From positions 108,666,840-108,701,547 of the forward strand of contig NC_068982.1 in assembly GCF_001194135.2 (NCBI RefSeq): a stretch of DNA of 34,708 bases, read 5' to 3'. The position numbers and the translations under genes are program-made. Under the pieces are notes generated by a model. That model did no database searches. It was not told where the DNA came from and was given only the letters and a program-made list of their open reading frames with translations. The first letter of the stretch is position 1; every line of letters starts with the position of its first letter. The DNA comes from Octopus bimaculoides. Its lineage: Eukaryota. Below are positions 1 through 29,840 of this stretch, in pieces.

Positions 1-226
1 CTCTGTGAAGTTACCTCAGTTGAGACAGTATTTCGCTTGAGCCAGTCAGCCTCTTCTCTGTCAGTTGCTCTCACTAACTGCTTTGGCTTACGGAGTTCTT
101 GTTTTTATAACTATCCAAAACTAGCCAGAAGGATAGACATATTGTTGAGAACAATAGATTTCGTTGGGGTCTGTTATCTCTATTCTTGCTTTTGGTGAAA
201 TAGAAGAGGTTAGAAGGGTCAAGTGG
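1..226. repeat. Segmental duplicate, copy A (first block); matches 6330-6555
   Basis: Position 1 aligns with 6330; about 5 differences over ~215 bp by eye. Confidence 0.95.
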
Positions 227-393
227 CAAAGACATTATTCTGCTTAGCGAAGGCATCTGGCAAATGTAACTGCTGTCACTCAAAACTATTGTTTTACAGT
301 GAGAAAAGTGCTGCTGAACAGTTAAATGAAATTTGGCGATTGCAGATCAAATCGCGTTATACCTGCATGAAGTCACTACAAAAGTATTCAGGA

Positions 394-419
394 TTGTTGT
401 TGTTGTTGTTGTTGTTGTT
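394..419. repeat. (TTG)n microsatellite
   Basis: Direct reading. Confidence 0.95.
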
Positions 420-424
420 AATGA

Positions 425-562
425 AAACAAAGTCTGCTGAGGTTGACTTTGCCTTTCATCCCTCTCTGAGTCAATAAAATAAGTACCAGTTGAGTACTGC
501 AGTTGATGTAATCAACTTATCCCCTACCCAAAATTGCTGGCCTTGAGCTAAAATTTGAAACT
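425..562 (+). mobile_element. SINE fragment
   Basis: gaggttgactttgcctttcatcc...aataagtaccagttgag...aaaatttgaaac matches a common octopus SINE body/3' end (recalled, not searched). Confidence 0.7.
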
Positions 563-570
563 ATTGTTAT

Positions 571-604
571 TACTACTACCACCACCACCACCACCACCAC
601 CACC

Positions 605-676
<72 letters not shown>
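571..676. repeat. Compound microsatellite (TAC)/(CAC)n/(TAC)n/(TAA)n
   Basis: Direct reading; explains the poly-L/poly-V ORF 517..735. Confidence 0.95.
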
Positions 677-677
<1 letters not shown>

Positions 678-864
678 TTTTATAAAGATTGATGTAACTC
701 TTCACAAAGATAAATAAACAATAAGAAGAGCACAATGTAATTTTTAATAGAGATTCACTTGGTTTATTGAAAAAGTGAAAACTGATGATTTTTTTTTTTC
801 TTTATCTAAGAAAGAATGCAGGATTTCCTCATTCATATTTTGAATTTCTGTGTTTCTATGTTAA

Positions 865-960
865 CAAGGGATTACCTGTTGAACACTGGAGTCAATGTAA
901 TTAACTTACCCCCTCCCACCAAATTGCTAGTCTTTTGCCAAAATTTGAAACCATTTGAAA
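865..960 (+). mobile_element. SINE 3' fragment, same family as 425-562
   Basis: gtcaatgtaattaacttaccccctccc...aaaatttgaaacc parallels 500-560. Confidence 0.6.
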
Positions 961-964
961 CCAT

Positions 965-1340
965 GATCATTATTTTGTTTTTGTACAACTCATTAGACAG
1001 TTGATAAAATTTACTAACATCAAGCTACAAGAAACCTTAGATGACGAAACCTTTCCTAAGTATACTAGATGTCCCTACTAATACTGTTTTCTGGAACTGC
1101 ACTAAACTAGGTTTTATGCCTATTTCCTTTATCCATCTGTTCGAATATTTAGGGATAGTTCCTAATGCACATATAACTACTGGGATGTATTTTACCCACA
1201 TTTTCCATAACCTCTGTAACTCAGTACTTTGCCATTTTCTCTATACCTCTCAAATTGATTTTCTCATCATTTGTCACTGTAAAGTCAACTACCTGGTTCT
1301 CTCTGTTCACTTTGTCTACAAATACTACTAAATCAGGCCT
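965..1340 (-). mobile_element. 3' end of an RLE-endonuclease non-LTR retrotransposon (R4/Dong-like), decayed
   Basis: Frameshifted translation RPDLVVFVDKVNRE..VVDFTVTNDEKINLRGIEK..TELQRLWKMWVKYIPVVICALGTIPK..IKEIGIKPSLVQFQKTVLVGTSSILRK: PD..D endonuclease motif and the typical C-terminus. Confidence 0.85.
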
Positions 1341-1990
1341 TCATTATTATCGCCGTCGTCGTTGTCATCATCATTTATCATCCATTTTCCATGTCGGCAT
1401 AGGCTGGATGGTTTGACAAGAGTTAGCAAGCCAGAGGGCTGCACCAGGTTCCAGTTGTCTGTTCAAACACGGGTTTTATAGCTAGATGACCGTCCAAATG
1501 ACAACCACTTCACAGAGTGTACTGGGTGCTTATTACAAAGTACTGGCACAAGTGCTTTTCATGTGGCACTGGCACAGGTACTTTGTTTGTGGAACAGGTG
1601 CTTCCTATGTAGTGCTAGCATGGATGCTTTTTTACTTGGAGCCAGCACAAGTGCTTTTTATATGGTACCAGTCCACACAGAGTCACCAAGTGGCTTGCAA
1701 GACAAGGATGTCTCAGCTGGGAGAAGTGGCCGTGTGACAGGCGAGAGGTTGGAGTATGATAGGAGCTGTTTTGTTACAGAAGAAATACTTGGCTACCCCA
1801 ATAGGATAAGGAAGTAGAGAGAGATGGAAGGTCATTGTAGCAGTGGTAGATAATGCAGTGAGGAGATAGCATGTCAATGTACCAGAGGTTGGAGTATTAC
1901 GAGTGACTTCATACCAATCATTCAGGTTGTATTTCTCTGGATGCAGCCTGGGATGGCTGTTAGTTGAGCACCAGGATCACATTGGGACAT
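1341..1990 (-). mobile_element. Non-autonomous retroelement with (GAT)n tail (family of 18184-18855, 25003-25492, 31851-32217), diverged
   Basis: (TCA)n tail followed by reverse complement of the family 3' end; right boundary approximate. Confidence 0.6.
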
Positions 1991-2305
1991 AGAGAATATA
2001 TATGTTCTCTATATATGTATGTGTAGATGTGAACAGTTAAACTAAAGTATAAATCACATCTCATTAGCCGACAAGCTTTGTAATTTAAATTATCATTCAT
2101 AATGTAAACACAGAGACCACATATTTATGAGGAAAGGGACTGTTGATTATACTAGGTTCAGCAGAATCCTGGAACTTATTTTATTGACTCTAGAAAAATG
2201 AAATGTAAAGCTGATCTTGAAAAGATTTAAATTCAGAATGTAAAGATATGCAACTAAATATCAAAGGCTGATGTACTGCCAATCTACCAATGCACTGCTC
2301 TAATA

Positions 2306-2474
2306 CACTAGTGTAGCTAGCGTGTGTGCTATTTGGGGTGGCCCTTCAGTCTGCCACACCTGGGCTGCCACAAAAAGTACATATTGCCTACAGCAGACCC
2401 AAAAGTGGCACCACACCCATAAAAGTGCTGCACATGGCAGACAACCCCTCTGTTCCCCTCTAGCTACACTAGTG
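2306..2474. mobile_element. MITE-like element with 15-bp perfect terminal inverted repeats
   Basis: CACTAGTGTAGCTAG (2306-2320) and CTAGCTACACTAGTG (2460-2474); no clear TSD. Confidence 0.65.
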
Positions 2475-3912
2475 CTTTAATAATAGTTAAAATTATGCTA
2501 CACGTACTACATTGTATACTGAAACACCATCATCTTTTTAATATACAGTATGATACACCATCTTAACCACCATCATCACCATTGTAGGCATTGGTGGCGG
2601 CAGTGGCATCGGCATTGGTGGCGGCAGTGGCATTGTTGTTCTTTTCACAGCTTTGCAAGCAGCATGATCAGGAGCATTCTCTCACCTTCCTCCCAACAAA
2701 GATCAATGCATTTTCATCTTCCTAAAAGAACTTGAAGAATTTAATTTTGGGGCTAAAATACGAAAAGCAACCTTCAGTTCTCAGTTATTCCAATCTAAAC
2801 CCATTGTATCATCTCTTTCACAAACATATGAATGTATTACTCGACAAGTCAACAATAGAGATTGATCAGCAAGAAATAGGAACCAAATTTCACACAAATT
2901 ATCTCACAGTCTCATAATGTGCTTCATAATGTGGTAACTGTACATTATACCTGTGTAGCAAGTCATGAAAGGCGGCAGTATGACATAATGTTTGTTTGCC
3001 CAAACAAGCATAATTGTTGGTATCCCATTGGTTAAAATTACTGTCCATATACGAATTCTAAACTTTTGTCAAAGAAATGTTTCATGAAATACAGTTCTTA
3101 GAATTCGGATATGAGCAGTTATAAAAACCCAGATTTTTGGGAAATTACTCAGTGTTCGTAGGATGTTACTAAACTCCACAACACTCATTCATTGAGATAT
3201 TGGCTATTTTTTATGCCATGTCTATGATAAAAATTCAACAAGACTTATCTGAATTGTTGTGAACTCTAGTAGTTAGTATGAAGGATTAGCTAGTGTGAAT
3301 TTTAAGTCATAATTCTCTATGACAAAATGACTTTACTTTCCAATTGTGCTATAAATGCTAAATGTACATAAATAAACTAATGTGGTAATTATTTTCTCTT
3401 TCTTCACACTCTTCAACTTGTTAATGAAATTTATTTCTGCAATTATGAAACTGTATATTTTTATAGTGATTAAAAGAACACAAATTTATTTATCTTCAAC
3501 ATACATGCACACATAAAATGTCCATTAGCGTTTCAGAGTATATATTTCTCGCTATGGTGTTTATGTAGCTGAAGTCAGGATTTATGTATAATGATAATAC
3601 TTATAAGTAAGTTATAAGTGACATGTTTATCAATATATATTCCTACTTCAAAAGTAAAATATATTTATTATCTATTTCCAAATAGGAAACATATAAAAGT
3701 AGTGTTATACAAACAGTAACCAAACCAGCTACACCTGAAAAGAAGGCAGGCTTGTCATGGCTAAAATACCACTGATCATTAGTTTGTTGAATCAGGGCTG
3801 GCCTCAAGTTAAAAAACAACTACATTACACTACATGGCTGTCCTTACAAAAGAGTACATGATGAACATACATGGACATTGATAAAGAGTACCACTTTTTA
3901 CTTACTTCTTAA

Positions 3913-4068
3913 GATGCAGTAGTGACTGAGTGGTATGTAGCATGCTTACCAACCACATGGTTTTGGGTCAGTCTCATTGCATGGCACCTTGGGCAAGTGT
4001 CTTCTACTATAGTAGCCTCGGGTCGACCAAAGCCTTGTGAGTGGATGGAAACTGAAAGAAGCCTGTCG

Positions 4069-4111
<43 letters not shown>

Positions 4112-4326
4112 GTATGTGTGTGTATATGTTTCTATCTCTGTATTTGTCCCCACTGCATTGCTTGACAACCGATGCTGGTGTGTTTACATCCCTGTAACTT
4201 AGTGGTTCAGCAAAAGAGACCGATAGAATAAGTACTAGGCTTACAAAGAATAAATTCTGGGGTCGATTTGCTCAACTAAGGGCAGTGCTCCAGCATGGCC
4301 GAAGTCAAATGACTGAAACAAATAAA
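3913..4326 (+). mobile_element. Near full-length tRNA-derived SINE, inserted in an exon
   Basis: tRNA-like head (gtgactgagtggtatgtagcatgcttaccaaccacatgg), internal (TA)/(TG) tract, tail ...gtcaaatgactgaaacaaataaag; possible AAGA TSD. Confidence 0.85.
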
Positions 4327-4430
4327 GAAGTAATTTCCAGAGCAAACACATCTAGTTCTTTTAGTGGAACAAAAGGCATTACAATCCAAACATTGATCTC
4401 CTTTTTCACAATCTTCACCAAAGCTTATCT
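4327..4430 (-). CDS. Second Cys-rich EB-module-like exon, interrupted by a SINE (possibly non-functional)
   Basis: Acceptor tacatttcAG at 4432-4431; phase 1; (K)ISFGEDCEKGDQCLDCNAFCSTKRTRCVCSGNYF; orphan GTAAGT donor at 3905-3900 beyond the SINE. Confidence 0.8.
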
Positions 4431-4589
4431 CTGAAATGTAGATTCATTAGTTATTGGAATTCATGTTAATCTGATATAATAAGCATTACAAAACGGGGCT
4501 ATACAGGTAACATTCAAAGAAATTTCCATAATAATATTTCCTTATATACAGACTAAGTAACTGGATTGATCATTAGATAAAATTTAATT

Positions 4590-5238
4590 AGAAAGTGTGA
4601 GCATAAAAGGCATCAAATGTGGTGTGCAAGAGAGATGACTGCACTGGTATGGTTGTGTGGTGCATGAGGACAGCTGTGTAAAGAAGTGCAGATCTCTAAC
4701 TGTGGAGGGAACCTGTGGTAGAGATAGATCCAAGAAGACATGGGACGAGGTGTTGAAGCATGATCTTGAAACGTTGGGCCTCACAGAGGCAATGACTAGT
4801 GACCAAGATCTTTGGCAATATGCTGTGCATGAGAAAACCCATCAGGCCAAGTGAAATTGTAGTTGTGGCCAATGCCAATCTTACATAACTAGCACCCATG
4901 TTGGTGGCACATAAAAAGCAACTTTTGAGTGTTTGGTCTCACAGAAGCAATGACAAGTGACTGAGGCCCTTGGAGATACACTGTGCTTGAGTAGAAAACC
5001 CATCAAGCTAAGTGAAATCATAGTCATGACAGATACTAGTGCTACACAACTGGCACCCATGCTGGTGGCAAGTAAAAGCACCCATTACAGTCTTGGAATG
5101 GTTGGTGTAAGGAAGGACATCTAGCCATAGAAACCATGCCAAATCAGACTGGAGTCTGGTGCAGCCCCTCAGCTTACTAGCCTTGGTCTAGCTATCCAAC
5201 ACATACCAGCATGGACCATGGACGTTAAATGATGAAGA
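4590..5238 (+). mobile_element. RTE-clade LINE 3' fragment with an internal imperfect duplication
   Basis: ORF 4657..4854 EDSCVKKCRSLTVEGTCGRDRSKKTWDEVLKHDL is the RTE C-terminus; ~4780-4925 is repeated at ~4935-5080; tail gacgttaaatgatgaagatg. Confidence 0.8.
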
Positions 5239-5242
5239 TGTG

Positions 5243-5560
5243 CAGGTATAGCTGTGTGATTTAGAAGCTCACTTTGTAACCACATAGTTTCAGGTCCAGC
5301 AAGTGCCTGCTACTAAATCCTCAGGCCAACCAAAGCCTTCTGAGAGAATTTGGTAGATCGAGACTGAAAATAAAGCCTCTTTTTTGTGTGTGCATGTGTG
5401 TAATTATGTGTCTTTATATCTGTGTTTGCACCCTCACCTGCACTATTGCTTGACGGCCAGTGTTGGTGTGTTTACGTCCCTGTAACTTAGCTGTTCAGCG
5501 AAAGAGAATGATAGAATAAGTACCAGGCTTACAAAGAATAAGTCCTGGGATCGATTTCTT
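5243..5560 (+). mobile_element. tRNA-derived SINE, same family as 3913-4326
   Basis: Shared body gtgtttacgtccctgtaacttag...gatagaataagtaccaggcttacaaagaataagtcctggg. Confidence 0.8.
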
Positions 5561-5666
5561 TAAGCATTGTTGCAGTAACCTATATTTATTTTTTTTTTAT
5601 TATTTCTAAGAGTAATCATAATCCTGTTTATAGTTCAATGTCAAAGTTCTGTTGTTTTTAACTTAC

Positions 5667-5789
5667 TTTCTTTACATGTAGATTTATCTTCAAAATAATC
5701 ATCTTTACAGACACACACTTGACTTTTGCAAGTGGTAAATAAAACTTTGCAGTCTGCAACTTTATCACATTTCCCATTGAGTGGTGCTT
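5667..5789 (-). CDS. EB-module-like exon (six Cys), 123 nt, phase 1-1
   Basis: Acceptor gtgtttcattgcAG; (K)APLNGKCDKVADCKVLFTTCKSQVCVCKDDYFEDKSTCKE; donor A|GTAAGT at 5666; Cys spacing C-x5-C-x6-C-x4-CxC-x10-C resembles the Pfam EB module. Confidence 0.9.
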
Positions 5790-6114
5790 CTGCAATGAAA
5801 CACATTAATTACAAAAATTAAATTGTGTATACCAACTTATAATAATAATTATTATATTAAAATTTATGGAACTCAACAACAGAAATAATGCATTTCTGAA
5901 TTGTTAGATATTGCTATTAGATTTTCTCTTATGATGATATATTTTTGTTATTATATTTATTATTCATTATTTTAGGAAGATATCAAGATATTTCTTTCTT
6001 TAAAAATGAATCAGATACATTTTGGAGAACATGCATCAAAATTTCAAGTTTAACAAAAATGTTTATGATCAAAATGTGTTGGAGGGTAACAAAACAAACT
6101 GAAAAAATAAAGAA

Positions 6115-6123
6115 NNNNNNNNN
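6115..6123. other. Assembly gap (9 N)
   Basis: Direct reading. Confidence 1.
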
Positions 6124-6329
6124 NCAACAGGTAGGCTAGTGTAATAGTGTAACACAGTTTGTAAAGCATGCAAAGTAAAAAGAGTTCATTTTGACCTGTA
6201 TATGAGTGTACACAAAGTAGTATATAGAGAGAGATATGGTTATGTTGCAGAGAAAAGAAATTGAGCTAATGAAAGTGAGAGAGTGTGGGACGAGACAGCG
6301 TCTACATTGATTTAATTCCATAGTTGTCA

Positions 6330-6601
6330 CTCTGTGAAGTTACCTCAGTTGAGACAGTATTTCGCTTGAGCCAGTCAGCCACTTCTCTGTCAGTTGCTCT
6401 CACTAACTGCTTTGGCTTACGGAGTTCTTGTTTTTATAACTATCCAAAACTAACCAGAAGGATAGACATAATTTTGAGAACAATAGATTTCATTGGGGTC
6501 TGTTATCTTTATTCTTGCTTTTGGTGAAATAGAAGAGGTTAGAAGGGCAAAGTGCCTATAAATACTACTAAATCAGGCCTTCATCATTATTGTCATCGTC
6601 G

Positions 6602-6641
<40 letters not shown>

Positions 6642-6729
6642 TTATCATCCATTTTCCATGTCGGCATAGGCTGTATGGTTTGACAAGAGTTAGCAAGCCA
6701 GAGGACTGCACCAGGTTCCAGTTGTCTGT
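6330..6729. repeat. Segmental duplicate, copy B: matches 1-226 joined directly to ~1316-1462 (about 1.1 kb deleted)
   Basis: 6330-6555 matches 1-226; 6560-6729 matches 1320-1462, with an expanded (CAT)n. Confidence 0.95.
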
Positions 6730-8225
6730 ATGTATGGATGGCCACAATTTTACTTAGCTTGACATGTCTTCTCAAGCACAGCAAACTGCCAGAAGTCTCA
6801 TTCCCTTGTCATCCCCTTCAGTGAGGCTCAATATCTGAAGATCCTTTCTCACCACTCTGTCCCACATCTTCCTCTATCTACCCCTTTTACAGGCTCCCTC
6901 TACAGTTAAGGATAGGTACTTCTTTATGCAGTTGTTCTCATCCATACACATCACATGACCACACCCGCACATTCTTCTCCCATACACATTACATCTGATG
7001 CCTCTTGTACCTGGTTATTTTCTTAAATTATTTACACTCTGTCGCACATGCACAGTGACATTACCCATCCAGTGGTGTATGCTGGCTACGTTTCTTTCAA
7101 GCCTTCACATATCGTCTATAGTCACAGCCCATGTTTCATTGTCATGTAGCATAGCTGTTGATATACAGATAGCATACAATCTGCATTTCATGCTGAGGTA
7201 AAGACCGGTTGTTATCATTAAAAAGTAGCAGCTCTCTGAATTTTGCCCAGCCCAATCTTATACTAGCAACTACACTTTCAGAGCTTCTACTTCCACTAGT
7301 AACTTACTAACTTCTGCCTCCACTATTAACTTGCTAACTTCCTCCTCCACTGTACCTAGGTAACAGAAGCTATCTACTACTTCTAAGGACCCCCACCCAC
7401 CAGACATTTGAAGAAATCTATTTTCTGTATATTCTTTGTGTTTAGTGTACCTGCACATCTGCCACACACAAAGACTACTTTCCTTGTTAACCGTCCTGTG
7501 ATACTGCTGCACTTTGTATGTATCCATAGCTTGTACTGAGTACACTGTACAGAGTTTCAACCCACATGTTTTCTACATATTAAGTAGGGCCATCTCCCTG
7601 AAGGGATCAGTGATTTACCTGTTTTCTAACATATTAGGACTTTGGTCTTTGCTAAATTAACTCTAAGGCCTTTTGATCCCAGACCATGTTCCACACCTGA
7701 AATTTCTTCTCTAGTTCTGGTAATCATTCAGCTATAAGAATAAGGTCACCAGTGTAGAAGAGCTCCTGTGGGCAGCCAGTCTTAAATTCCTCTGTTATGG
7801 CCTAGAGAACTATGATAAACAAGAAGGGTATGCAAGCCAATCCTTGGTGAACTCCTACTTGTACACTATATTCCAAGCTATTATCATTGCCGACTTTCAC
7901 CTCACTGACTCCATCCCTGTACGTGACTTGTACAGCTCTCACCAACCACTCATCTATTCCTAGCTTCTGCATCGCCCACCAGATAAGAGAGTCAGGGTCC
8001 CCATCCAAGGCTTTCTTCATGTTGACAACAACCAAGTACAGAGGTCTATTTTTGGTTAAATACTTCCCTTGCTGTTGCTTGTCCAAGAAGATAGCATCAG
8101 TAGTGTTTCTTCCAGGCACAATCTCAAACTGCATCTCATCTAGACTAACCCTCTTCCTAACTTTCTGTAACTTTCATCACTTGGTCCAGCAATTTGATAC
8201 CTCTGTAATTATTTCTGTCTAAAGC
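6730..8225 (-). mobile_element. RTE-clade LINE, 5'-truncated and decayed
   Basis: ORF 7802..8134 QFEIVPGRNTTDAIF...KKALDG...IWWAMQKLGIDEWLV...VGVHQG (RT); ORF 7270..7560 LEVVDSFCYLG; 3' end at 6730. Confidence 0.9.
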
Positions 8226-8344
8226 ATCATCTTTACCTTTGTAGCAGTTGACTATAATGTTGCTTCAGCAGTTGTTGGGTATGACTCACAAGGGGACAAT
8301 CTGATTAGCTATACTGGTGACTAAGCCATATCCTACTCTACAAG

Positions 8345-11095
8345 TTTACTTACTGTCAGTATGAATGGTAAAATTCCGCAAAAACTTATACTTCTTACTT
8401 ACTAGCACTTGACTAGGTTCGCATTTGAACCACTTATCAGTATGGTCAAATCCTAGCTTTCTACATAATTTCCAATGGATTATTCTCCCTAATTTGTCAT
8501 ACTTTTTTGTATTCCTTTTGTGCTAGCATACTACATTCATTAACTATATAAGTAACACTTTCGTCCTTTAATTTATATAACCTACATAGAGAATTTACCT
8601 GATTTTTATCTATCTTAGCTTTTATCCAGTTATTCCTCTATGCCTGATCTTATGTTCCTATTAAACTTTCTGTCTCCCTTTTTAGCTTTCCTTTCTACCA
8701 CCACAACCAATTTCACTATTATTATTTTCTGCAACTATTTTTAGAAATCTACCATCAAACCTTTCTCTTATCAGTCAGATAATCTTGCTTCCTTTTTCTG
8801 GCTTTTAATGACACTTGGCTTTTTGGTTTCCCCATCTCCTACTGTTACACTAAAATTTTGTCACTATTACCTACATAGGAAGCTATATCCACTCTAGCTA
8901 ACTCCACACAGTCTTCTACTGATATTAAACCTCTATCACCTTCCTTTGTAGGTAAATACAATCTTGCTACTCCATTCGTATTGAATTTGTTCTTCTGTCT
9001 AGATTTGCTAATTCAAATTTTGTCCAATCTACAAAAGCTGTTGAATATTGAAGTAAGGACAGTGTCCAAGTACTTACAGCCTTCGCCAGATTTGGACCAT
9101 TTAGCTTTGACTTCATTAACTTCCTCACCCATCTGACGTACTTCTTATCAACTTTCTCTTTCATTTCTATAGTTAGTATTCTGTCAGATTCTAATACTCC
9201 TTGATACTTATAACTTTTAATCTCTGGCTATCTGGTTTTTGAATGCTTTCACTACTAACTACATGTACCTTTTTTATGACTAATATTGTACACTTATCTA
9301 TGCCAAATTCCATGTTTATATCATTGCTGAAGAGTCTTACAGTTTTTATAAAAGAATCTGTCTCCTTTTTATTCTTAGTAAAAAGCTTCAAATAATCCTT
9401 GTAGAGAAAATTGTTAATGTTTCCTTTGCTATCTCTGAACTGATACCCTGCCTTTGTCTTTCTTAATACTAAACTGAGTGGGGTTAAAGGTAACACAAAT
9501 ATTAAAGGAGACAATGAGTCTCCTTGGAAGATTACCTCTCTTGATATTAACTTTCCCTAAGGTTGTATAACCTGAGTAAAGTCTACTTTCCATTTTTTTT
9601 GTGTTATAGCTAACTAAATCTTTTATGTTGTCTGTAATATTGAATATACTCAAACATTTGCTTATCCATGAACATGAATTCATGTCATAGGTGTTCTTAT
9701 AATCTATCCATTATAAAATTTTTCTTTCTTGATTTCACTTCTTTTAGAACTGCTTTGTCTATGTTTAATAGATCATAAACTCCTCTAGCCTTCTTCCTGC
9801 AATCTTTCTGTTTTTCTGGAAGTAAATTCTGTCTGTCAAGATGTTCAGAAATGCCTTCTGAGAGCATTTCTGTTAACACTTTGCTCACTAAAGGTAAGCA
9901 AATTATTGGTCTATGATTATTAGCTATATTTCCCTTACTTTTGTCTTTTATAAGGAGTACAGTACTCCCTCTGGTCATCTAGTTAGGTATGAATCCTCCA
10001 TTCAAACAATCCTGAAGCTGTTCTCTCATTCTACCATGTAAGTTTCTAAATATCTTTAACCAATACCCTTGAACTAAATCTGGTCCAATGCTCTTCCAAT
10101 TCAGCATTCTTCCTAAGATGTTATTCATTAATGCACTTGTTAGTTTTAGATCTGTCTGCTTCTCACTAACTATTTCTTCCCTCACTTTCTTTAACCATGT
10201 TGCATCCTCATTATGACCAACTAGTTTATCTCAAATATCACTCCAGAACTTTCTAGCTTCTTCTACATTAGGTTCTTCATCCTCAGTAGTTTCTTCTACA
10301 CTATTTACTTGGCAATAAAATTTCCTCTGGTTTGTCTTTAACAATCTGTTCTGTTGATACTGATCTATTCTTTTCTGATATCTGGAAAGCTTACTAGATA
10401 CTGCTATGATACATTGTTTCAACTCTTCTATGATTATCCTAAATCCTTTCTCTTTAACTAAGTATGTTTTGTTAAGATTTAAATCTTGTATTTCCCACCT
10501 TGTCCTGTTCCTAGGCTTCTATTCTACTCAGATCTTGGCTTAAAATATTCACTTTATTTTGTAATTTCCTTGTCTGCATCAGCTCCTTCCTATTCTTTCT
10601 TCATGGAATACTTAGTCTGCTGGTAACTATCACACCTGCTGCATAGCTCGATAAGTTAGTGTCACCTATATTTATAGTATCTACTTTCATAATAATATCA
10701 AGTAACTTCCTTTTATTAACACCTTTTAATTCTAGTAATCTTTTGCTCTCTTCTCATTACTTCTTTGAACTCACCTAAAATCTTTAGTCACTGGGGTCAG
10801 TTTTTCCCTTCCTGATTGGTAGGACTATTATTTTTTCTTGTAGGCTCGTCCTGACTTGAACTATATCACTTATGCATCTTGTTTCATCCTGGTTTGTGTT
10901 GTTTAGCTGTTCTACTTCTTGGTCTTTCTTTTTTGTCTTGCGATATATTCTACCTCCAATTCAGTCATCCACTTATTTCTCTTAATGGTATTAACCTGGT
11001 CCATTGGTCATACTTTTTTTTTAAAAAGTGCTAACATATGTTTCCTGTAACATCACTACCCTGTTACCTTCACTTGTCCATTTCCTCTTCATTAT
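8345..11095 (-). mobile_element. RLE-type non-LTR retrotransposon (R4/Dong-like) RT body, pseudogenised
   Basis: Colinear fragments SKLSRYQKRIDQYQQNRL, WKSIGPDLVQGYWLK, HRPIICLPL, LYKDYLKL (decayed YMDDLKL), MEFGIDKC, KYKFLRNFTIHTDSK; many stops; 5' boundary approximate. Confidence 0.9.
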
Positions 11096-11199
11096 TCTAT
11101 TATGTACTAATGCTGTCTTAGAATAACAACTGATGTCAGCCTGCATCCGTACTAAACAACTGCCAAGCAAGAGGTCTTCCCTTAAGGAAAGTGGTTTTA

Positions 11200-11850
11200 A
11201 GGGAAGTGGTTTATCAATTCAAAAATCGATATCCACAAAATAATCATACTTTCTGATTTTTTAATGCTACAAACCTTCCTGATGACCGTCTTTGTAATCC
11301 TGAAAAATGTCGTAACCATTAGTCCAGCTGTCTGGTCAGGAAGAGGGAACAAAGAGACAGACAGACAGATGGACATAACACCCACTGTAGTAAGATAGCA
11401 AAACTGCCCGTCTATGATGGGAAATAAAGGGATAGTATCGCAAATCTAAACCCTCTAAATTCATGAACTATACGGGGGGAAATCTAGATTTAATCCTTGT
11501 TGCCGGAATTCTAACAAAAAGAATCAAGGGTGATTTATTAATACAAAACTCAATATCCACTAAACAACCATACTTTTTCACATTTTTTTCACTAAAAACT
11601 TTCCTGATTACCACCTTCATAATCCTGAAAAACATTGTGACCATTGGTCCAGCCATTTGACCGTGAAGAGGGAACAGACAGGTAGACGGACATAACACCC
11701 ATTATAGTAAGATCATTACCTCCGCCATCACTAAGGCAGAGGTATTGTTTTGGATGGATTTGGATGAAACTTTCAGGGATGTTTGGCCTTGTGACTGGCA
11801 CAAACTGAATAGATTTTGGGATCGATCTGGTACCAGAAATCTGCAACCAC
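11200..11850. repeat. Two diverged tandem copies of a non-autonomous repeat plus an adjacent MITE-like piece
   Basis: ~11268-11396 resembles ~11595-11712 (ctgaaaaa..gaagagggaaca..acagacagatggacataacaccc..tagtaagat); the GACA microsatellite and end resemble Helitron-derived short elements (inference). Confidence 0.5.
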
Positions 11851-11859
11851 AATAAAACA

Positions 11860-12962
11860 ACATAACAAGGTGCCACATATCTTTCAATTTCAATGAGCAA
11901 ATCTTTATATTTTCTGAGCTTGTCAAATTCCATTGCCAAGATATTATAATCACAAGGAATACTTATGTCGAGCAATAAACAGACTTTATTGTTTTGGTCT
12001 TTCACAACGATATCCAGTTTATCAACTTTGATTGTTCTGTCTGTATGTACCAGAAAGTCTCAAAGAATTGTTACATTTTCTACCTCAGTTACAGCCTCAG
12101 ATTGGTACTCATATCACTTGCTAACAGTCTTGATTTTATGATGCCAACGTATTAACCAGTGTATATATTAGCCAACTCTGTCATGTCTTGATTTATACTC
12201 TACTGCTGCTAAAATTTTACATCCAGAGATTAGGTGGTCCACTGTTTCAATCTCATCATTGCAGAATTGGCACTTTGGATCTACTCCATTTTTCATCACA
12301 TTGGCTTAGTAGTTCCAGGTCAGCAAGTTTTGGTCTTGAGCAGCTAAGATGATGCCTTTGCTTTCTGCTTTTGGCCCTGAACTCTTTAGCTACTGATACA
12401 TGTGCTTCTGGTCAATATCAGATTGTTTGCTATGGGTCACATATTCGCCATGCAGAGGTTTCTGTTCTCACCTATCAACCAATTGTTCATTCACTTTTTT
12501 CCTCGCCATTAATTTCACCTTCTTTGTAATATTAGTTACTGCATTTCCCTCTTGCCATTGTTTTATGATAGTATTTTGTAGTTCCAGTTTTAGCTTAAAT
12601 TTTACTTGCTTTACAGCTTTTGTTGTTTTTCCTTTTTACTTTACTCATGCTTTGAGATTACTTGTAGTAGTTTTCCTTGGTTCTGAAAAAGATATCTCTG
12701 TAGTCTTATGATGAATATTTATAGTAATTTTTTAGTTATATAGGGCCTCTACCACCTTCAGTTTGTTGTATATATAACCTTTCTATGTCAGATTTTGGGT
12801 GGTGTATTCTAAATTCCATCATTATTTTTCTTGTTTTCCTGCCTAGTTTGACTAATTCACTTAGTGTCCAAATATCGTAACTGTAACTTATAACTGGGAC
12901 AGTGAGAGTGTTGATACCTATTATCTTGTTTTTTTGTTTTTGCATTGAGCTCTGTTTTACCC
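11860..12962 (-). mobile_element. Second RLE-type LINE family, 3' part (late RT, CCHC knuckle, RLE)
   Basis: NKIIGINTLTVPVISYS..HHPKSDIERLY..EGGRG; PKCQFCNDEIETVDHLISGC; KLDIVVKDQNNKVCLLLDISIPCDYN..KLRKYKDL. Confidence 0.85.
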
Positions 12963-13054
12963 TTATTAGATGGATAGTCATCATGATGGGTATATTGGGT
13001 TTCATATATTTGTACCCCAGTGTTACTTTGATGGCATGTACTGCTCTCTCACTC

Positions 13055-13084
13055 AATAATAATAATAATAATAATAATAATAAT
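13055..13084. repeat. (AAT)n microsatellite
   Basis: Direct reading. Confidence 0.95.
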
Positions 13085-13124
13085 TGAGTTCATGCATGAT
13101 ACCCAGGCTGAACAGGAGGAGGGA

Positions 13125-13442
13125 AGTGCAGTAACCGGTATTGCAAAGAAGGTGAAATTAATAGCAAGGAAAAAAAGTACATGAACAACTGGCTTATAGG
13201 CAGGAGCAAAAATCTCTACATGGCAAATATGTGGCCCATAGTAAACAAGCTGATGTTGACCAGAAGCATACATGTAAGTGGCTACAGAGCTCAGGGCCAA
13301 AGGCAGAGAGCAAAGGCATCATTTTAGCTGCTCAAGATCAAAGCCTACTGACCTGGAAATGCCAAGTCAATGTGATGAAAAATGTAGTATTTCCAAAGTG
13401 CCAATTCTGCAATGATGAGATTGAAACAGTGGACCACCTTTT
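13125..13442 (+). mobile_element. Inverted paralogous fragment of the same LINE family (zinc-knuckle region)
   Basis: ORF 13231..13467 SSGPKAESKGIILAAQDQSLLT..PKCQFCNDEIETVDHL; inverted, diverged match to ~12232-12560. Confidence 0.85.
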
Positions 13443-13525
13443 AAGTACTAATCTAATTTGTCTATAATATTTATTCCTAATCTTATCTTTCATTTGTACA
13501 TGTACCAATGTTGTTATCATCATTA
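13443..13525 (-). mobile_element. RT fragment contiguous in the LINE with the piece starting at ~12962
   Basis: MKDKIRNKYYRQIRLVLK, which joins to (K)TELNAKNKIIG. Confidence 0.7.
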
Positions 13526-13774
13526 TTATTCATGGTGAAATCCCCTGAAATGAATCCGTAGCAGTTGCATTTAATGAAATAGTGAGAAATCAAGATGAAC
13601 ATCTGAATGCCTACTGAGTGACATTCATTCTTAAAACAAAAACACCAGGAATGCCAAATGAACTAGGGTCCCATAACTTGCTGGTCAACAATATACAAAG
13701 TCCCTCACATCCATACTCTAAAATAAGCCAGTTATTCACCTTGAGAATAATATTGTATCAGAAGTCACCATAAG

Positions 13775-14088
13775 GTCCAGTCCTTGTTGCTATGTGGTGT
13801 TTTGTGTGCCTCAATGCCCCTGAAAACTATGCCAGTGGAGTGCAAGCTCCTGATAGGGTCTCTCATGCTAGAAAGGTCAAAAGATGGGCAGGTAAGGGAT
13901 ATAGACCACCTCTTCCCAGTCATAAAAACAGGTTTGTGTAGGGTTGACATCCCTACCTGGAAAAAAGTATTGATGACAATTTGAAAACAACTTTCAAGAA
14001 CTGGAAGAGGATACCCCAGAGTCAAGAACAATGGAGAAAAAAATCGTTGATGACCTGTGCTCCTTAGGGACCAAAAGGCTTAGGTAAG
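13775..14088 (+). mobile_element. Short RTE-derived element: 5'UTR joined to 3' end
   Basis: tgtgtgcctcaatg..aactatgccagtggag..gtagggtctctcatgctag resembles RTE 5'UTRs; tggagaaaaaaatcgttgatgacctgtgctcc..aaaggcttaggtaag resembles RTE 3' ends (recalled). Confidence 0.5.
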
Positions 14089-14565
14089 AAGAGCAGAAAG
14101 CATACTGGATAGGAATGTTTGGCTGTAAAGAGCAGTTACTGAAAAATTGTGCTATTTGTTTTGGGATGATCTGAGTGTGTGGTGTTGATAAGTCACAATA
14201 ATGGTGAAATATCAGTATCTATCACTCTCAGATTCATTCTCATGCAAGTTGTCTTGCCTGGTCTGTGACATTCAGGTGTTCTTTGACACTTGACATTGTG
14301 TAGGGAGCTTTCCCAGATGCTATCTTGCTGCAAATTTGGCATATAAACAAAACACATACACTGCATATGTATGATCAGTAATATATATAGTATGTTGTAT
14401 GAATGTAAGTATGTATATACAGAGAGATAAATAAGATAGATAGATAAAGAGAGAGTTCGAGAGTAAGTATATCACAGAACATGTCTGATATATTTCATGT
14501 TGTATATTGCGCAAATTATCAAGCAATCAGAAAAAAGAAGAAGAGAAAAACTAATAATTCCTTAC

Positions 14566-15016
14566 TAGCAGTCGTAGTTGTTAAATGTGTTGTATATTCT
14601 TCAGATGTGTTCATTGATGGTGCTTGTGTGTCAAACTGTGTTACATTCTCAGTGTCACTGGTTGATGTTGTTTCGAAAGAAGTGTTGGTTAGTATTTCTC
14701 CAGTTGGGCTAATTAACATTGTATTCCGAGATGCACTGAAGGGAGTTGTTATTTCAGATGCATTGAGTTTTGTTCCATTCTCAAGTGCTGAAGTATAAGA
14801 TGCAGTTGAAGATACTAAGTTTCCTTGTGCATTAAATGGTTGTGCACTTTTAGGTATATCTGTTGCTTGTGATGCTCCTGCTGCATTCTTTTTTACCGTG
14901 ATTTCCTTTATAACTTGCATTGCCTTTGTTTGGCCTGCCTTTGGTTCTGTCATGAAATCATTGATTTTACTAATGTGATGATTTGGTGAGACAGAAAAAG
15001 ATGCTGGCTGACCATG
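14566..15016 (-). CDS. Ser/Thr-rich mucin-like exon, 451 nt, phase 0-1
   Basis: Acceptor tttttttgttttAG at 15018-15017; stop-free HGQPASFSVSPNHHISKINDFMTEPK...TTHLTTTTA; donor A|GTAAGG at 14565; five N-X-S/T sequons (NGT, NAS, NTS, NVT, NTS). Confidence 0.9.
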
Positions 15017-16978
15017 CTAAAACAAAAAAAAAAAACAAATGGAAATTAATATAAGAAAACATATGAAAAGCTTTTAGTTTTGGTTATTCATTTTTAATGC
15101 AAGAGAAAAAAATCATTTTGCCAGGAGTCCATTCTTTTTCTTTTCTGTTTGTGAAATGGAAGGAATGAAATATATAATCTTTATGCATCTATTTAGTTCA
15201 ATTTTCTTTTCAACTAAAGAGTCCGTATTATTCATATATAACTACTATTCTCATCTCGCTGGATCCCTTCAGTTCAGAGTAACCAAGGATCTGGGGCTCA
15301 GTTAATTACTCTCCGTTACATTAAGGAGGAAGCGGGAATATAGAAAAAGTGTATATTGAAAGCATTTCACTTGGAGGAAGACAATACAATTGTGTAACAA
15401 AATATTGATAAGAAGTCCTCCAAATTACATTTCATAATTTTTCATTAATATATTTTTTAAAAATTTGTTATTCTTTCTATTTTTCCGCATGAACAAAGAG
15501 TGGGTAAAACAGAAAGTTAAGAAAAAATATGTCAAAATTCATGGAGCATGTATTTATTGTTGGGTGCTGTTCTTACATTGTCAGTTAACCTAAAAGGTGT
15601 AACACTTAGAAAATGATTGGTCAACAAACTTGTGATTGATCATTGTATTCCATGTCACTCTGTTACATTTATTCTCCAAAATAACAAAATAAAAATGTTT
15701 TGTTACAGTTGCTCACTTTATACTATGTGCATCTTCATTTTAGAAACAGTACACTGCATCCATACGAGTTGTATGGTCAGTGATATGAAGGGTATCCTAC
15801 CATTAAAAAAAAAACTGCCTCAGAAAACCATCCGATCCATGCCTGAAAGAGTGGACATAAAATGCTTATGAGGAGGGTGACAGCTATGCTTCACTACTAT
15901 GAGATTTTTGTCTGTCCAAATCATTCTTTCTGTAAATATTTTTGTAGTAAATTGTCATTTCTAAATCCAATTACTTGAGTGTGAAATGAGAAGTGTACAT
16001 ATTTTAGCTTAATTGAAACAAGTAGCATAGTTGAATTTTGTTAAGAGTCAGTAATTACATGGCAACTTAGGATTCTTGAATTGGTGGTTCAACACAACTA
16101 AATAACTGTGGGAAACACTGGTGTACAAGAATTATATTTTGGAAACTCTCTTCATCCTCTCTGTCTTGTTAGCAAATATCACCAACCTACAAGAATCCAG
16201 ACCTTTTTTTTCTGTTTTTGTTTAATGACTGAATCAGATGAGGGAGGGCAGGATCATTGCCACTTTGCAGAACCTTGATTGGAAACCTGTCTCAAACGTT
16301 TGCATTACCTCCACCACCAACACCATCACCATCACTATTATCCTCATTTTTGCATTTACCTTTGTATGCTGACATGGGTTAGATAGGTCATTATAAACCA
16401 AAACAGTTCTTTATAAATGCTACTACCCTCTCAGATAGGTTGGGGACTTCATGCTCATATAACTCATTTTTTAATATGTTTTCTATTGCTAGATGTCCTT
16501 CCTATCTTCAACCACTTTATAAAGTATACTGAGTGTATTTTGTAGTGGCAAAGCTGGAAAGTTGTCCCTGCTCTATATTGTGTCTGTTTGCTTGCTTAAC
16601 CACTTAACTGAAGGTACAGGGTGGACTTTATCATGGCACCAGCACTACAGATGTTGTATTGTCCCTGACAAGACTTATAGGCCCCCTCTGCCCTATGTTG
16701 ACTCTGTTCATTTATTGTTCACCAGCACAAATGGATTGTTCAGATGAAGCAAGGAGTAGAGAGAGTGATGAAAGAGGCCCAAAATAAGAGGTTGATAGTT
16801 TAATTGTTCAAAATTTACCTAACCATATACTATTTCTATAAAGAATGGGAAATACAGGGGAATATAAATTATGTTAATTAGTTTTTAATTAATAGGGGGT
16901 GGGGCGATTCTTCAAGCATCCAGTTTCACTAGCATCTCTCAAGATAGGATAGAACTAAAAAATACCATGTTAACTTAC

Positions 16979-17032
16979 CTTTATAAGGAATGAGACCACC
17001 CAAAGAATGGTGTATACTGGAAAAGTCTTCAT
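16979..17032 (-). CDS. First coding exon: signal peptide MKTFPVYTILWVVSFLIK (exon 17035-16979)
   Basis: Acceptor tttttcttacAG at 17037-17036; ATG at 17032; basic residue followed by a hydrophobic core; donor AAG|GTAAGT in phase 0, matching the next exon. Confidence 0.85.
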
Positions 17033-17442
17033 TGACTGTAAGAAAAATAGCAGCAATTTTATAGATAGATAGATAAATAGATAGACAGACAGACAGACAG
17101 ATAGATAGATACATACATACATAGATATGTACGTACATACATATATACATATGTACGTACATACATACACCACACACAAACTCACTCATAATTATAACCA
17201 AGGAGAAGGAAATGAGCAAGTCTTTTTATTACATTGATTTACAATTGTTTCATCAAAAAATGATCTCATGAGCATTACTATATTATCATGCAATAATATA
17301 TGCAACCATTTATACATGAGACATCATGGACACAAAATCAAAGACTGATTCTTTGGAATCACATATAAAAATTATTTGCTGTGGAAACTTGAGTGAACAA
17401 TAATCTATACCTATACTGATTTGGGCATATTTAAATGATTAC

Positions 17443-18855: not shown

Positions 18856-19282
18856 CATGTACTATGCACATATATATCAGATCATTAGTAATATATTCAA
18901 AAGAAAAGGTGTTTCTCTGTATGTCCTGTTACGCATATCCAGTGATACACATTAACCAGTTATAGCATTTCCCAGAGCAGAGTACATGCTTATGCGGATG
19001 CATGAAGATAAAAATTATTGTCAATGTTATTTGAAATTTTCACAGATCAATCTTACGATCTATTCATACAATTTGATTTGCTTTTGTGATATAAGACATC
19101 TAAAAATATTTATTGCATAGTGTTTACTCTGTTTCTTTAATACTAATAATATTTTGTTTTGGTAAATATGAAGAATCTTTCCCAACAACAAATTAAAAAG
19201 AAAAAGTTTTCTAGGGTAAAATGAATGTGTAGACAACGAAGAACACAATAAAAATGGTGGACCTGGTGCACCCCCTAAACTG

Positions 19283-20078
19283 NNNNNNNNNNNNNNNNNN
19301 NNNNNNNNNNNNNNNNNNNNNNNNNNNNNNNNNNNNNNNNNNNNNNNNNNNNNNNNNNNNNNNNNNNNNNNNNNNNNNNNNNNNNNNNNNNNNNNNNNNN
19401 NNNNNNNNNNNNNNNNNNNNNNNNNNNNNNNNNNNNNNNNNNNNNNNNNNNNNNNNNNNNNNNNNNNNNNNNNNNNNNNNNNNNNNNNNNNNNNNNNNNN
19501 NNNNNNNNNNNNNNNNNNNNNNNNNNNNNNNNNNNNNNNNNNNNNNNNNNNNNNNNNNNNNNNNNNNNNNNNNNNNNNNNNNNNNNNNNNNNNNNNNNNN
19601 NNNNNNNNNNNNNNNNNNNNNNNNNNNNNNNNNNNNNNNNNNNNNNNNNNNNNNNNNNNNNNNNNNNNNNNNNNNNNNNNNNNNNNNNNNNNNNNNNNNN
19701 NNNNNNNNNNNNNNNNNNNNNNNNNNNNNNNNNNNNNNNNNNNNNNNNNNNNNNNNNNNNNNNNNNNNNNNNNNNNNNNNNNNNNNNNNNNNNNNNNNNN
19801 NNNNNNNNNNNNNNNNNNNNNNNNNNNNNNNNNNNNNNNNNNNNNNNNNNNNNNNNNNNNNNNNNNNNNNNNNNNNNNNNNNNNNNNNNNNNNNNNNNNN
19901 NNNNNNNNNNNNNNNNNNNNNNNNNNNNNNNNNNNNNNNNNNNNNNNNNNNNNNNNNNNNNNNNNNNNNNNNNNNNNNNNNNNNNNNNNNNNNNNNNNNN
20001 NNNNNNNNNNNNNNNNNNNNNNNNNNNNNNNNNNNNNNNNNNNNNNNNNNNNNNNNNNNNNNNNNNNNNNNNNNNNNN
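19283..20078. other. Assembly gap (796 N)
   Basis: Direct reading. Confidence 1.
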
Positions 20079-20639
20079 ATCAATCTTACGATCTATTCAT
20101 ACAATTTGATTTGCTTTTGTGATATAAGACATCTAAAAATATTTATTGCATAGTGTTTACTCTGTTTCTTTAATACTAATAATATTTTGTTTTGGTAAAT
20201 ATGAAGAATCTTTCCCAACAACAAATTAAAAAGAAATTCAGAGGCGTGACATCGCACAAGTTCATTTCCATAAATGTTTCTCTTGCACACCCCGCCAAAA
20301 TAAAAAATTTTGAAAACGTGGTTTTTTGCATATTCGGAATCTCCATCATTGAAAACATGGGAATCCGGTGAAAAAAAAATATTGGAAAGGTCAGTTTAGG
20401 TGCAGCAGGAAGTTTTGTCAGTGAACAGGTCGCAGTTTCAGAGCACCAAAAATATTTTGACACAAATTAAATTTAAATGTTGAAGTGAATCTAACAGTTT
20501 TTTGTGTGTTCTTAAATGGCTTACAATCATCTTCCACACTGCAATTGTTGTTTCAGCACATGATCTCAGATCAAGTCACTTGCTATGCAAGTACATCTCC
20601 ATAATTTTCATTTGTGTCAGAATTTTCGTTCCTTGACCA

Positions 20640-29721: not shown

Positions 29722-29840
29722 CTTTTATCTTTTACTGGTTTCACTCATTTGACTGCGGCCATGCTGGAGCACCACTCTGAAGGGTTTTAGTTGAACAAAT
29801 CAACCCCAGGACTTTTCTTTCTTTAGCTTAGTACTCTTTA
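29722..29840 (-). mobile_element. SINE 3' fragment
   Basis: Reverse complement of the SINE tail (tttcactcatttgactgcggccatgctggagcac). Confidence 0.75.

Follow-up and report, generated by a model that had tools for sequence, protein, structure and literature searches.

The analysed stretch of the Octopus bimaculoides genome (34,708 nucleotides of contig NC_068982.1, positions 108,666,840 to 108,701,547, hereafter the window) very probably holds the 5′ third of LOC106876748, a gene of 17 exons and about 70 kb that encodes a receptor-type protein tyrosine phosphatase (PTP) of type I membrane topology. The gene model is based on public annotations and on conservation; one UniProt entry and two RefSeq XP entries share one identical 813-aa protein. 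A protein search with exon 2 gave 100% identity to residues 19-168 of XP_052834560.1 / A0A0L8GHW8, and the joined translation of exons 1 to 3 (minus strand, 17032-16979, 15016-14566 and 5789-5667) was identical to residues 1-209. Exact spliced alignment of XP_052834560.1 to the genomic locus (L001) yielded 17 GT-AG exons. An earlier note, made from the sequence alone, had proposed four spliced minus-strand exons with phases 0, 1 and 1, and the first three are exactly the first three of this alignment, whereas the fourth (4430-4327) is absent from it. Reading of the raw sequence alone thus recovered three real exons to the base, two of them separated by an 8.8-kb intron that contains an assembly gap. 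The gene is not hidden, as had been supposed: the exon 1-2-3 chain is already present in RefSeq (XP_014780921.1 / XP_052834560.1) and UniProt (A0A0L8GHW8). A word-index homology search gave no match for the joined 244-aa product or for the 76-aa EB pair, an outcome that misleads, since its database contains XP_052834560.1; an exact look-up of the exon 2 ORF likewise gave no gene call. A literature search by accession and for the EB module together with octopus returned nothing, and no paper was found on the EB-module ectodomain of LOC106876748, an uncharacterised receptor phosphatase.

Coding exon 1 (16979..17032, 54 nt, read directly) starts with ATG, ends at a phase-0 donor GTAAGT and encodes MKTFPVYTILWVVSFLIK, residues 1-18. 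This segment is a predicted signal peptide by hydrophobicity, the -3/-1 rule and conservation as the sole criteria: a hydrophobic core follows MK (mean Kyte-Doolittle value 2.54), cleavage after residue 14 would satisfy the -3/-1 rule, and O. sinensis and O. vulgaris share 17 of the 18 residues. Upstream of exon 2, no other combination of ATG, hydrophobic core and GTRAG phase-0 donor occurs within 19.7 kb. An acceptor-like sequence, TTTTTCTTACAG, precedes the ATG by 4 nt, which makes a separate 5′ UTR exon possible. Coding exon 2 (14566..15016, 451 nt, phase 0 to 1, acceptor ending in TTTTAG, donor A|GTAAGG) encodes residues 19-168, an N-terminal stretch rich in Ser/Thr and N-glycan sites, and its O. 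sinensis ortholog is 466 nt long. Coding exon 3 (5667..5789, 123 nt, phase 1-1, acceptor TTGCAG, donor A|GTAAGT) encodes residues 169-209, the first EB module. Only 0.14 stop-to-stop pieces as long as the 150-codon open stretch of exon 2 are expected in the window; this length, the uniqueness of exon 1 and the identity to the annotated 813-aa protein show that the exon 1-3 chain is more than a chance arrangement.

Intron 2 (5790..14565, 8776 nt as assembled) contains the remains of decayed retroelements, among them a weak reverse-transcriptase match at 9191-9514, and a gap of 10 N at 6115-6124, 326 nt upstream of the exon 3 acceptor. As the gap lies inside the intron, no exon or reading frame crosses it. 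Intron 2 is collinear along its full length with intron 2 of O. sinensis (8037 nt). The two gap flanks were compared for an overlap of unmerged ends and none was found; in the gap-free O. sinensis ortholog they keep their order and orientation and lie about 140 nt apart (L002 14797 and 14938). The window part of intron 3 comprises positions 1..5666. Window position 1 corresponds to L001 27032 in gene locus coordinates and is followed by a gap of 2333 N (L001 27033-29365), beyond which exons 4 to 17 are located to the left of the window; the distance from window position 1 to the true exon 4 (L001 30444-30566) is about 3.4 kb.

The segment at 4327..4430 (minus strand), which had been taken for the fourth exon, was identified as a pseudo-exon, a truncated paralogous copy of the true exon 6, which encodes the fourth EB module. 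It retains the acceptor TTTCAG and an EB-like reading frame open for 34 codons, and shows 85-89% nucleotide identity to exon 6 (85% to L001 38145-38245), and its flanks on either side show homology to intron sequence. An octopus SINE (3912..4326, minus strand) lies inside it and supplies in frame ...FICFSHLTSAMLEHCP, followed by a stop codon. There is no donor at the pseudo-exon before the SINE, and read-through leftward from 4326 reaches an in-frame stop after ...CVCSGNYFFICFSHLTSAMLEHCP. The head of the SINE, TTTATTTGTTTCAGTCATTTGACT, recurs at window positions 29731-29772, and more than 10 copies of the element, at 80-89% identity, are present in the O. sinensis locus. On the far side of the SINE, a 3′ remnant of the pseudo-exon with the donor TAAGAA|GTAAGT (3900..3911, minus strand) precedes a homolog of the intron downstream of exon 6, with 92% identity to L001 38274-38444 in the sequence past the SINE. 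A scan of all six frames by HMM and by Cys pattern found no further EB exons in the window.

If the SINE stemmed from an error in assembly or from a private insertion allele, the fourth exon could be functional, and in most animals a fifth, intact EB exon would be spliced in between exons 3 and 4. The acceptor, the 34 open codons and the donor copy GTAAGT surviving past the SINE are in keeping with such an exon, as is the variation in EB exon number among species and isoforms (3, 4 or 5 modules). Even with the SINE removed, however, the copy remains short of exon 6 by its final ~20 nt, including the last Cys codon. It is skipped by the annotated transcript of 17 exons and occurs in none of the annotated isoforms found, and the intron between exons 3 and 4 of O. 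sinensis contains no counterpart at that position. With the missing donor and the in-frame stop, these observations make a functional coding exon at 4327..4430 quite unlikely, and the segment is regarded below as a skipped relic.

The EB-like Cys unit recognised in the earlier note was confirmed as Pfam EB (PF01683), with 34-37 bits for exon 3 and the pseudo-exon against a cut-off of 24.3. In XP_052834560.1 as a whole, four EB stretches with a conserved Cys pattern were found (61.7 bits, cut-off 24.3); the three further modules are encoded outside the window, each by one phase 1-1 exon of 123-129 nt. A sequence search of the PDB with the EB ectodomain matched no solved structure. The exons beyond the window also encode one predicted transmembrane (TM) helix, followed by one classical PTP domain with an acidic tail. 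The domain order of the protein is a predicted signal peptide, the stretch rich in Ser/Thr and N-glycan sites, four EB modules, the TM helix, an R3-like PTP domain and the acidic tail. The putative TM segment, IVFPYWWLGIIIVILLLVIAVFAYLFL, is hydrophobic over roughly 27 aa, is conserved, and separates the ectodomain from the PTP domain. Y_phosphatase (PF00102) matched at 246.2 bits (cut-off 20.9), with residues 439-669 spanning profile positions 1-232 of 234; this was the only such stretch found by Pfam, indicating a single catalytic domain. The catalytic motifs VHCSAGVGRTG (HC(X)5R), KWPDF (WPD loop) and QMVQNQDQY (Q-loop) are intact and align with PTPRE D1, while the phosphotyrosine-loop motif KNRY reads KNRF. 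In the acidic tail, some 140 aa long, the sequence MYSNDY provides a Y-x-N motif, a feature of R3 receptor PTPs.

These downstream domains bear on whether the gene encodes a secreted, non-enzymatic product, a mucin-like or matrix glycoprotein in which EB modules follow a signal peptide and a mucin stalk. Within the window alone, only a signal exon, a Ser/Thr-rich exon and EB modules are visible, and use of the pseudo-exon would end the product in the SINE as a secreted protein of 260 aa. The annotated product, however, runs on into the TM helix and the PTP domain, as it does in O. sinensis and O. vulgaris, and the pseudo-exon is missing in O. sinensis. Exon 2 has an S+T content of 30% (44% in its final 50 aa), 5% Pro and five N-x-S/T sequons, and no tandem repeats were found in 14566-15016; it thus lacks the tandem repeats rich in Pro, Thr and Ser that characterise mucins, and the term mucin stalk was an overstatement. 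A secreted product of this kind is accordingly very improbable. The suggested role as a mucus or matrix protein went astray because the defining domains lie outside the window, while the expectation of a surface glycoprotein whose first exon is of the signal type, whose N-terminus is rich in glycans and whose EB modules lie on phase 1-1 exons, and which continues to the left of the window, agrees with the annotated 813-aa protein.

The pseudo-exon and exon 3 lie together in a block (2077..6111, minus strand) that duplicates, at 87-90% nucleotide identity, the region of exons 4 to 6 (L001 30126-39390) but lacks the part with exon 5. This block is the source of exon 3, which is of the exon 4 type, and of the pseudo-exon, which is derived from exon 6. 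The duplication was intragenic; its exon 4 copy persisted as exon 3, and its exon 6 copy was interrupted by the SINE, leaving the skipped relic. It is extremely improbable that the 6.1-kb contig carrying exon 3 (window 1-6114), gap-bounded at both ends (6115-6124; L001 27033-29365) and 87-90% similar to the exon 4-6 region, is instead a misplaced copy or haplotig of that region with a spurious exon 2-3 junction, since an orthologous exon 3 occupies the same place in the O. sinensis assembly, which is gap-free, the O. bimaculoides exon 3 block is closer to exon 3 (90.3%) than to exon 4 (86.6%) of O. sinensis, the collinearity of intron 2 extends to the gap from either side, and 10-13% divergence is far above allelic levels. 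Between the paralogous exons 3 and 4, the exon sequences are 70% identical and the introns 90-93%. Gene conversion was considered as the main cause of introns being more alike than exons, and was rejected because orthologs of two species show the same pattern of exons changing faster than introns.

The O. sinensis ortholog (P0112) shares the 17-exon structure in a gap-free assembly. The O. vulgaris protein, which was compared at the protein level only, and the O. sinensis protein align end to end with that of O. bimaculoides, and the full architecture is annotated in both. In O. sinensis, the ortholog of exon 3 is a cassette exon, present in isoform X1 (815 aa) and skipped in X2 (774 aa). The Argonauta ortholog carries N/T-rich tandem repeats in place of EB modules. 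Among molluscan receptor PTPs with EB modules, Haliotis rubra 'receptor-type tyrosine-protein phosphatase eta-like' XP_046560436 shares EB modules, a predicted TM helix and a single PTP domain, but differs in an additional fn3 domain and six EB stretches. An 882-aa protein from a Logan run assembly has the same combination and shows 38% identity across 542 aa that take in the EB array, but has five Pfam EB stretches and lacks the S/T-rich N-terminus.

Among known phosphatases, the R3-subtype receptor PTPs (Drosophila Ptp10D/Ptp4E; vertebrate PTPRB/VE-PTP, PTPRJ, PTPRO, PTPRH and PTPRQ) resemble the octopus protein, a predicted type I membrane protein, in having a single cytoplasmic classical PTP domain, and they are its best single-domain matches among solved structures (198-224 bits), led by Ptp10D (224 bits), VE-PTP (223) and PTPRJ (214). 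The R3 ectodomain is a chain of fibronectin type III domains, whereas that of the octopus protein consists of EB modules and the S/T-rich stretch, with no fn3 hit in Pfam, and is thus not of the fn3-only kind. NCBI names the O. sinensis and O. vulgaris orthologs CD45 / PTPRC. CD45 has an analogous layout, with a glycan-rich N-terminus, Cys-containing extracellular modules and cassette exons that change the ectodomain, and its ectodomain evolves fast against a conserved phosphatase, as in the octopus protein. CD45, however, has two tandem PTP domains (D1, D2) and fn3-type modules, and its D1-D2 scores below R2A and R4 two-domain proteins, R3 being best among single-domain chains. Orthology to CD45 / PTPRC was therefore rejected in view of the single PTP domain with its ~140-aa acidic tail and of EB rather than fn3-type modules. 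The Cys pattern of the EB modules in nematode proteins (PF01683) matches that of the octopus modules, which score above the Pfam gathering threshold. Nematode EB proteins are mostly secreted and often combine the module with Kunitz domains; unlike these, the octopus EB modules form a phosphatase ectodomain. In the snail Biomphalaria sudanica, the SudRes1 receptor-like PTPs carry diverse Cys-rich extracellular modules at evolutionarily dynamic loci, and a role in pathogen recognition has been proposed for them (PMC11398393). They differ in having MEGF and GBD ectodomains and tandem PTP domains (PMC11398393). Their likeness to the octopus receptor is one of analogy only.

Evolutionary rates were compared between O. 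bimaculoides and O. sinensis. For this one species pair, with few synonymous sites, the EB exons showed dN 0.265 and dS 0.156 against 0.096 in the intron flanks, and dN/dS was ~1.6-1.7 for the ectodomain, within which the alignment of exon 2 is less certain owing to indels, and 0.17 for the PTP domain. Ectodomain dN was about three times the intron divergence. The comparison of nonsynonymous with synonymous sites gave p = 0.02 for the ectodomain and p = 0.08 for the EB modules only, and that of ectodomain nonsynonymous sites with introns gave p = 3e-15. Between O. vulgaris and O. sinensis, 35 of the 38 amino-acid differences are in the ectodomain. As judged from these alignments, the ectodomain evidently changes much faster than introns while the phosphatase domain is conserved.

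By analogy with known receptor PTPs, the glycosylated, Cys-knotted ectodomain would bind an extracellular partner and thereby control the cytoplasmic phosphatase, which would strip phosphate from tyrosines of membrane-proximal substrates, like other single-domain R3-type receptor PTPs. Variation of the ectodomain by exon duplication, by cassette splicing of the first EB exon in the sister species and by faster-than-neutral change suggests a recognition role under diversifying selection. The more specific proposal, that the EB-module receptor phosphatase serves in immune, self/non-self or gamete recognition and has had its ectodomain diversified by EB exon duplication, of which the SINE-disrupted pseudo-exon would be a relic, by cassette splicing and by positive selection, is tentative and rather doubtful; if true, the protein would be functionally analogous, in cephalopods, to CD45 or to the SudRes1 receptor PTPs of the snail. 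Taken together, the module-by-module exons, copy-number variation, cassette splicing and faster-than-neutral change make LOC106876748 a reasonable candidate, as a modest lead rather than a discovery, for studying how diversifying selection acts on a surface receptor of cephalopods.

The exons proposed in the earlier note were read directly on the minus strand of the window. Exon 1 begins with an ATG at 17032 and runs for 18 codons (MKTFPVYTILWVVSFLIK) to the donor GTAAGT after 16979, exon 2 extends from 15016 to 14566 (451 nt; acceptor ...GTTTTAG, donor A/GTAAGG), and exon 3 from 5789 to 5667 (123 nt; acceptor TTGCAG, donor A/GTAAGT). Joining of the minus-strand exons in phases 0, 1 and 1 reproduced the peptide of that note exactly, and the Cys-rich EB module (PF01683) suspected there was confirmed in the exon 3/4 product by Pfam (34-37 bits; cut-off, 24.3); a six-frame scan of the window turned up no additional EB-like unit. 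By chance, the window would contain 0.14 open stretches of 150 codons, and exon 1 is the sole combination of ATG, hydrophobic core and phase-0 GTRAG donor within the 19.7 kb that precede exon 2. The exon 1-2-3 chain is beyond chance.

In a full HMMER search, exon 2 alone hit one protein, the 813-aa P0001, with 100% identity over 150/150 residues. P0001 (XP_052834560.1 / XP_014780921.1) is named 'uncharacterized protein LOC106876748 [Octopus bimaculoides]' in RefSeq and 'Protein-tyrosine-phosphatase' in UniProt (A0A0L8GHW8), and exons 1-3 correspond to its residues 1-209. When the joined 244-aa product served as query, a word-index protein search had returned nothing, though its database contains P0001 with the 209 identical residues. 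In P0001, Pfam recognised EB in four stretches (61.7 bits) and a complete Y_phosphatase domain (residues 439-669, 246 bits), with a hydrophobic stretch of ~27 residues between them. P0001 keeps intact catalytic motifs (VHCSAGVGRTG, WPD and the Q-loop), with KNRF in place of KNRY. The gene is thus annotated, though uncharacterised, and therefore already known, as a predicted receptor tyrosine phosphatase. Exact spliced alignment of P0001 to the genomic locus L001 (CM046602.1, assembly GCA_001194135.2), of which the window is the reverse complement at 100% identity (window x = 27033 - L001 position), gave 17 GT-AG exons translated without mismatch. EB exons 4, 5 and 6 (123, 123 and 129 nt), each of phase 1-1, are located past a 2333-N gap abutting window position 1, followed by a putative TM exon and ten more exons; the gene therefore continues leftwards past the window edge, as had been supposed.

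Divergence between O. bimaculoides and O. sinensis (locus L002) was estimated by the Nei-Gojobori method. The dN/dS ratio was 1.69 for the EB exons (dN 0.265, dS 0.156), 1.58 for the S/T exon, 0.49 for the TM and juxtamembrane part, 0.17 for the protein tyrosine phosphatase (PTP) domain and 0.57 for the tail. It was 1.3-2.0 in each EB exon, as in every ectodomain exon, and intron flanks differed by 9%. Relaxed constraint retains some plausibility as a source of the ectodomain rates. Nonsynonymous and synonymous sites differed with p = 0.02 for the ectodomain and p = 0.08 for the EB exons alone, and ectodomain nonsynonymous sites differed from introns with p = 3e-15. The same pattern as between orthologs was seen between the O. 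bimaculoides paralogs exon 3 (5667-5789) and exon 4 (L001 30444-30566), which are 70% identical with flanking introns 90-93% identical (dN/dS 3.2, Fisher p = 2e-9) and share an identical acceptor context, TGTGTTTCATTGCAG.

The fourth exon of the earlier note, starting at 4430 on the minus strand behind an acceptor TTTCAG, is absent from the 17-exon model. No donor was found for its frame, and reading through ends in ...CVCSGNYFFICFSHLTSAMLEHCP followed by a stop. A SINE starts at 4326 and ends at ~3912; its head, TTTATTTGTTTCAGTCATTTGACT, occurs again at 29731-29772, and the O. sinensis locus holds >10 copies. The proposed exon is 85% identical in nucleotides to the true exon 6, its upstream intron is homologous to that of exon 6, and beyond the SINE, donor and following intron match their exon 6 counterparts at 92% identity. 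It is short of ~20 nt relative to exon 6, including the last Cys codon. As the stretch 6111-2077 repeats the exon 4-to-exon 6 region with 87-90% identity, the exon 5 part being left out, an intragenic duplication gave rise both to exon 3 (from the exon 4 type, still used) and to a pseudo-exon (from exon 6, dead). In the gap-free O. sinensis locus, an orthologous exon 3 is present, no exon 6 copy was found in the exon 3-exon 4 intron, and this intron retains only a part homologous to sequence downstream of exon 6. Thus, the earlier observation was largely correct, with exons 1-3 exact and the fourth a SINE-disrupted duplicate.

Repeat copies at 1-225 plus 1313-1462 and at 6330-6729, 96-98% identical and 6.3 kb apart, flank the exon 3 contig, one on each side. 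The left copy holds a 1.1-kb insertion with microsatellites and another SINE type. The pair probably belongs to the intragenic duplication or represents a young mobile element.

The assembly gap at 6115-6124 lies inside intron 2, and 326 nt separate it from the exon 3 acceptor downstream, so nothing is read across it. Its flanks showed no mutual overlap. The O. sinensis ortholog P0112 (XP_036356456, 815 aa) has the same 17-exon structure in an N-free locus, and intron 2 (8037 nt, vs 8776 nt in O. bimaculoides) is collinear throughout. The positions of the gap edges in L002 are 14797 and 14938, with order and strand kept; judged by this collinearity, the contig join is correct, and the assembled intron probably lacks ~140 nt. 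That the exon 3 contig is instead a misplaced copy of the exon 4-6 region is very improbable, as the O. bimaculoides exon 3 block is closer to O. sinensis exon 3 (90.3%) than to exon 4 (86.6%).

At a second gap (19283-20078, 796 N), the 158 nt directly to the right (20079-20236) are 100% identical to 19046-19203, which ends 80 nt left of the gap. These look like unmerged overlapping contig ends, or else a true tandem duplication; as identical sequence lies on both sides, the gap length is doubtful.

Several mobile element remains lie in and upstream of the gene. A 336-aa ORF on the plus strand at 20585-21595 matches Helitron_like_N (72 bits), overlaps an annotated gene of 225 aa (L001 5180-6322) and lies ~3.5 kb upstream of the phosphatase start codon. 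Intron 2 contains decayed retroelement pieces at 7270-9978 (minus strand), where 9191-9514 matches RVT_1 weakly. A second element, at 29931-30792 (plus strand) upstream of the gene, carries an ORF of PHD/C1-like zinc-finger type, as well as a LINE tail motif of the RLRWFGHV type.

Exon 2 is rich in S+T (30%; 44% in the last third) and encodes five N-x-S/T sequons. With no tandem repeat in the exon and only 5% Pro, its predicted product is a glycan-rich spacer rather than a PTS-repeat mucin domain. Of the earlier interpretation, the leftward continuation and the EB modules held, and the mucin stalk and a functional fourth exon did not.

The best single-domain matches of the octopus PTP among solved structures were the R3 subtype receptor PTPs Ptp10D (224 bits), VE-PTP (223), PTPRJ (214), PTPRB and PTPRO; two-domain PTPs outscored them only because both their domains match. 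The octopus ectodomain is without fn3 and therefore departs from the fn3 ectodomain of R3 receptors. A sequence search found no solved structure matching the EB array. The name CD45, given to orthologs by NCBI, was rejected because the octopus protein has one PTP domain. A Haliotis rubra protein combines EB, TM and PTP as in octopus, but has fn3 as well and six EB stretches. The combination recurs in a protein of 882 aa from a Logan run assembly (38% identity over 542 aa); as this protein is on a 3.6-kb contig, its source is presumably cDNA. In the O. vulgaris model P0110 (1050 aa, 195-kb range), the phosphatase is joined to a part from Peptidase_C48 (sentrin-specific protease 8), probably by read-through or a merged model of the upstream neighbour.

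Where octopus has EB modules, the Argonauta ortholog carries tandem repeats rich in N and T: in A. hians P0006, ~10 tandem 9-aa units, (Q/M)(M/R)LNYTTD-like and rich in N-glycosylation sequons, take the place of EB, and the ectodomain is wholly turned over while the PTP domain is still 81% identical. Between O. vulgaris and O. sinensis, the ectodomain accounts for 35/38 amino-acid differences, and the 231-residue PTP domain has none. The exon 3-type module behaves as a cassette whose copy number varies by species, as seen in isoform sets (815 and 774 aa in O. sinensis; 861, 820 and 779 aa in O. vulgaris). Snail receptor PTPs with diverse Cys-rich ectodomains are reported from a parasite-resistance locus (PMC11398393); their likeness to the octopus gene is an analogy only. 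Among the few species compared, the pattern of ectodomain variation would fit diversifying selection on a recognition surface.
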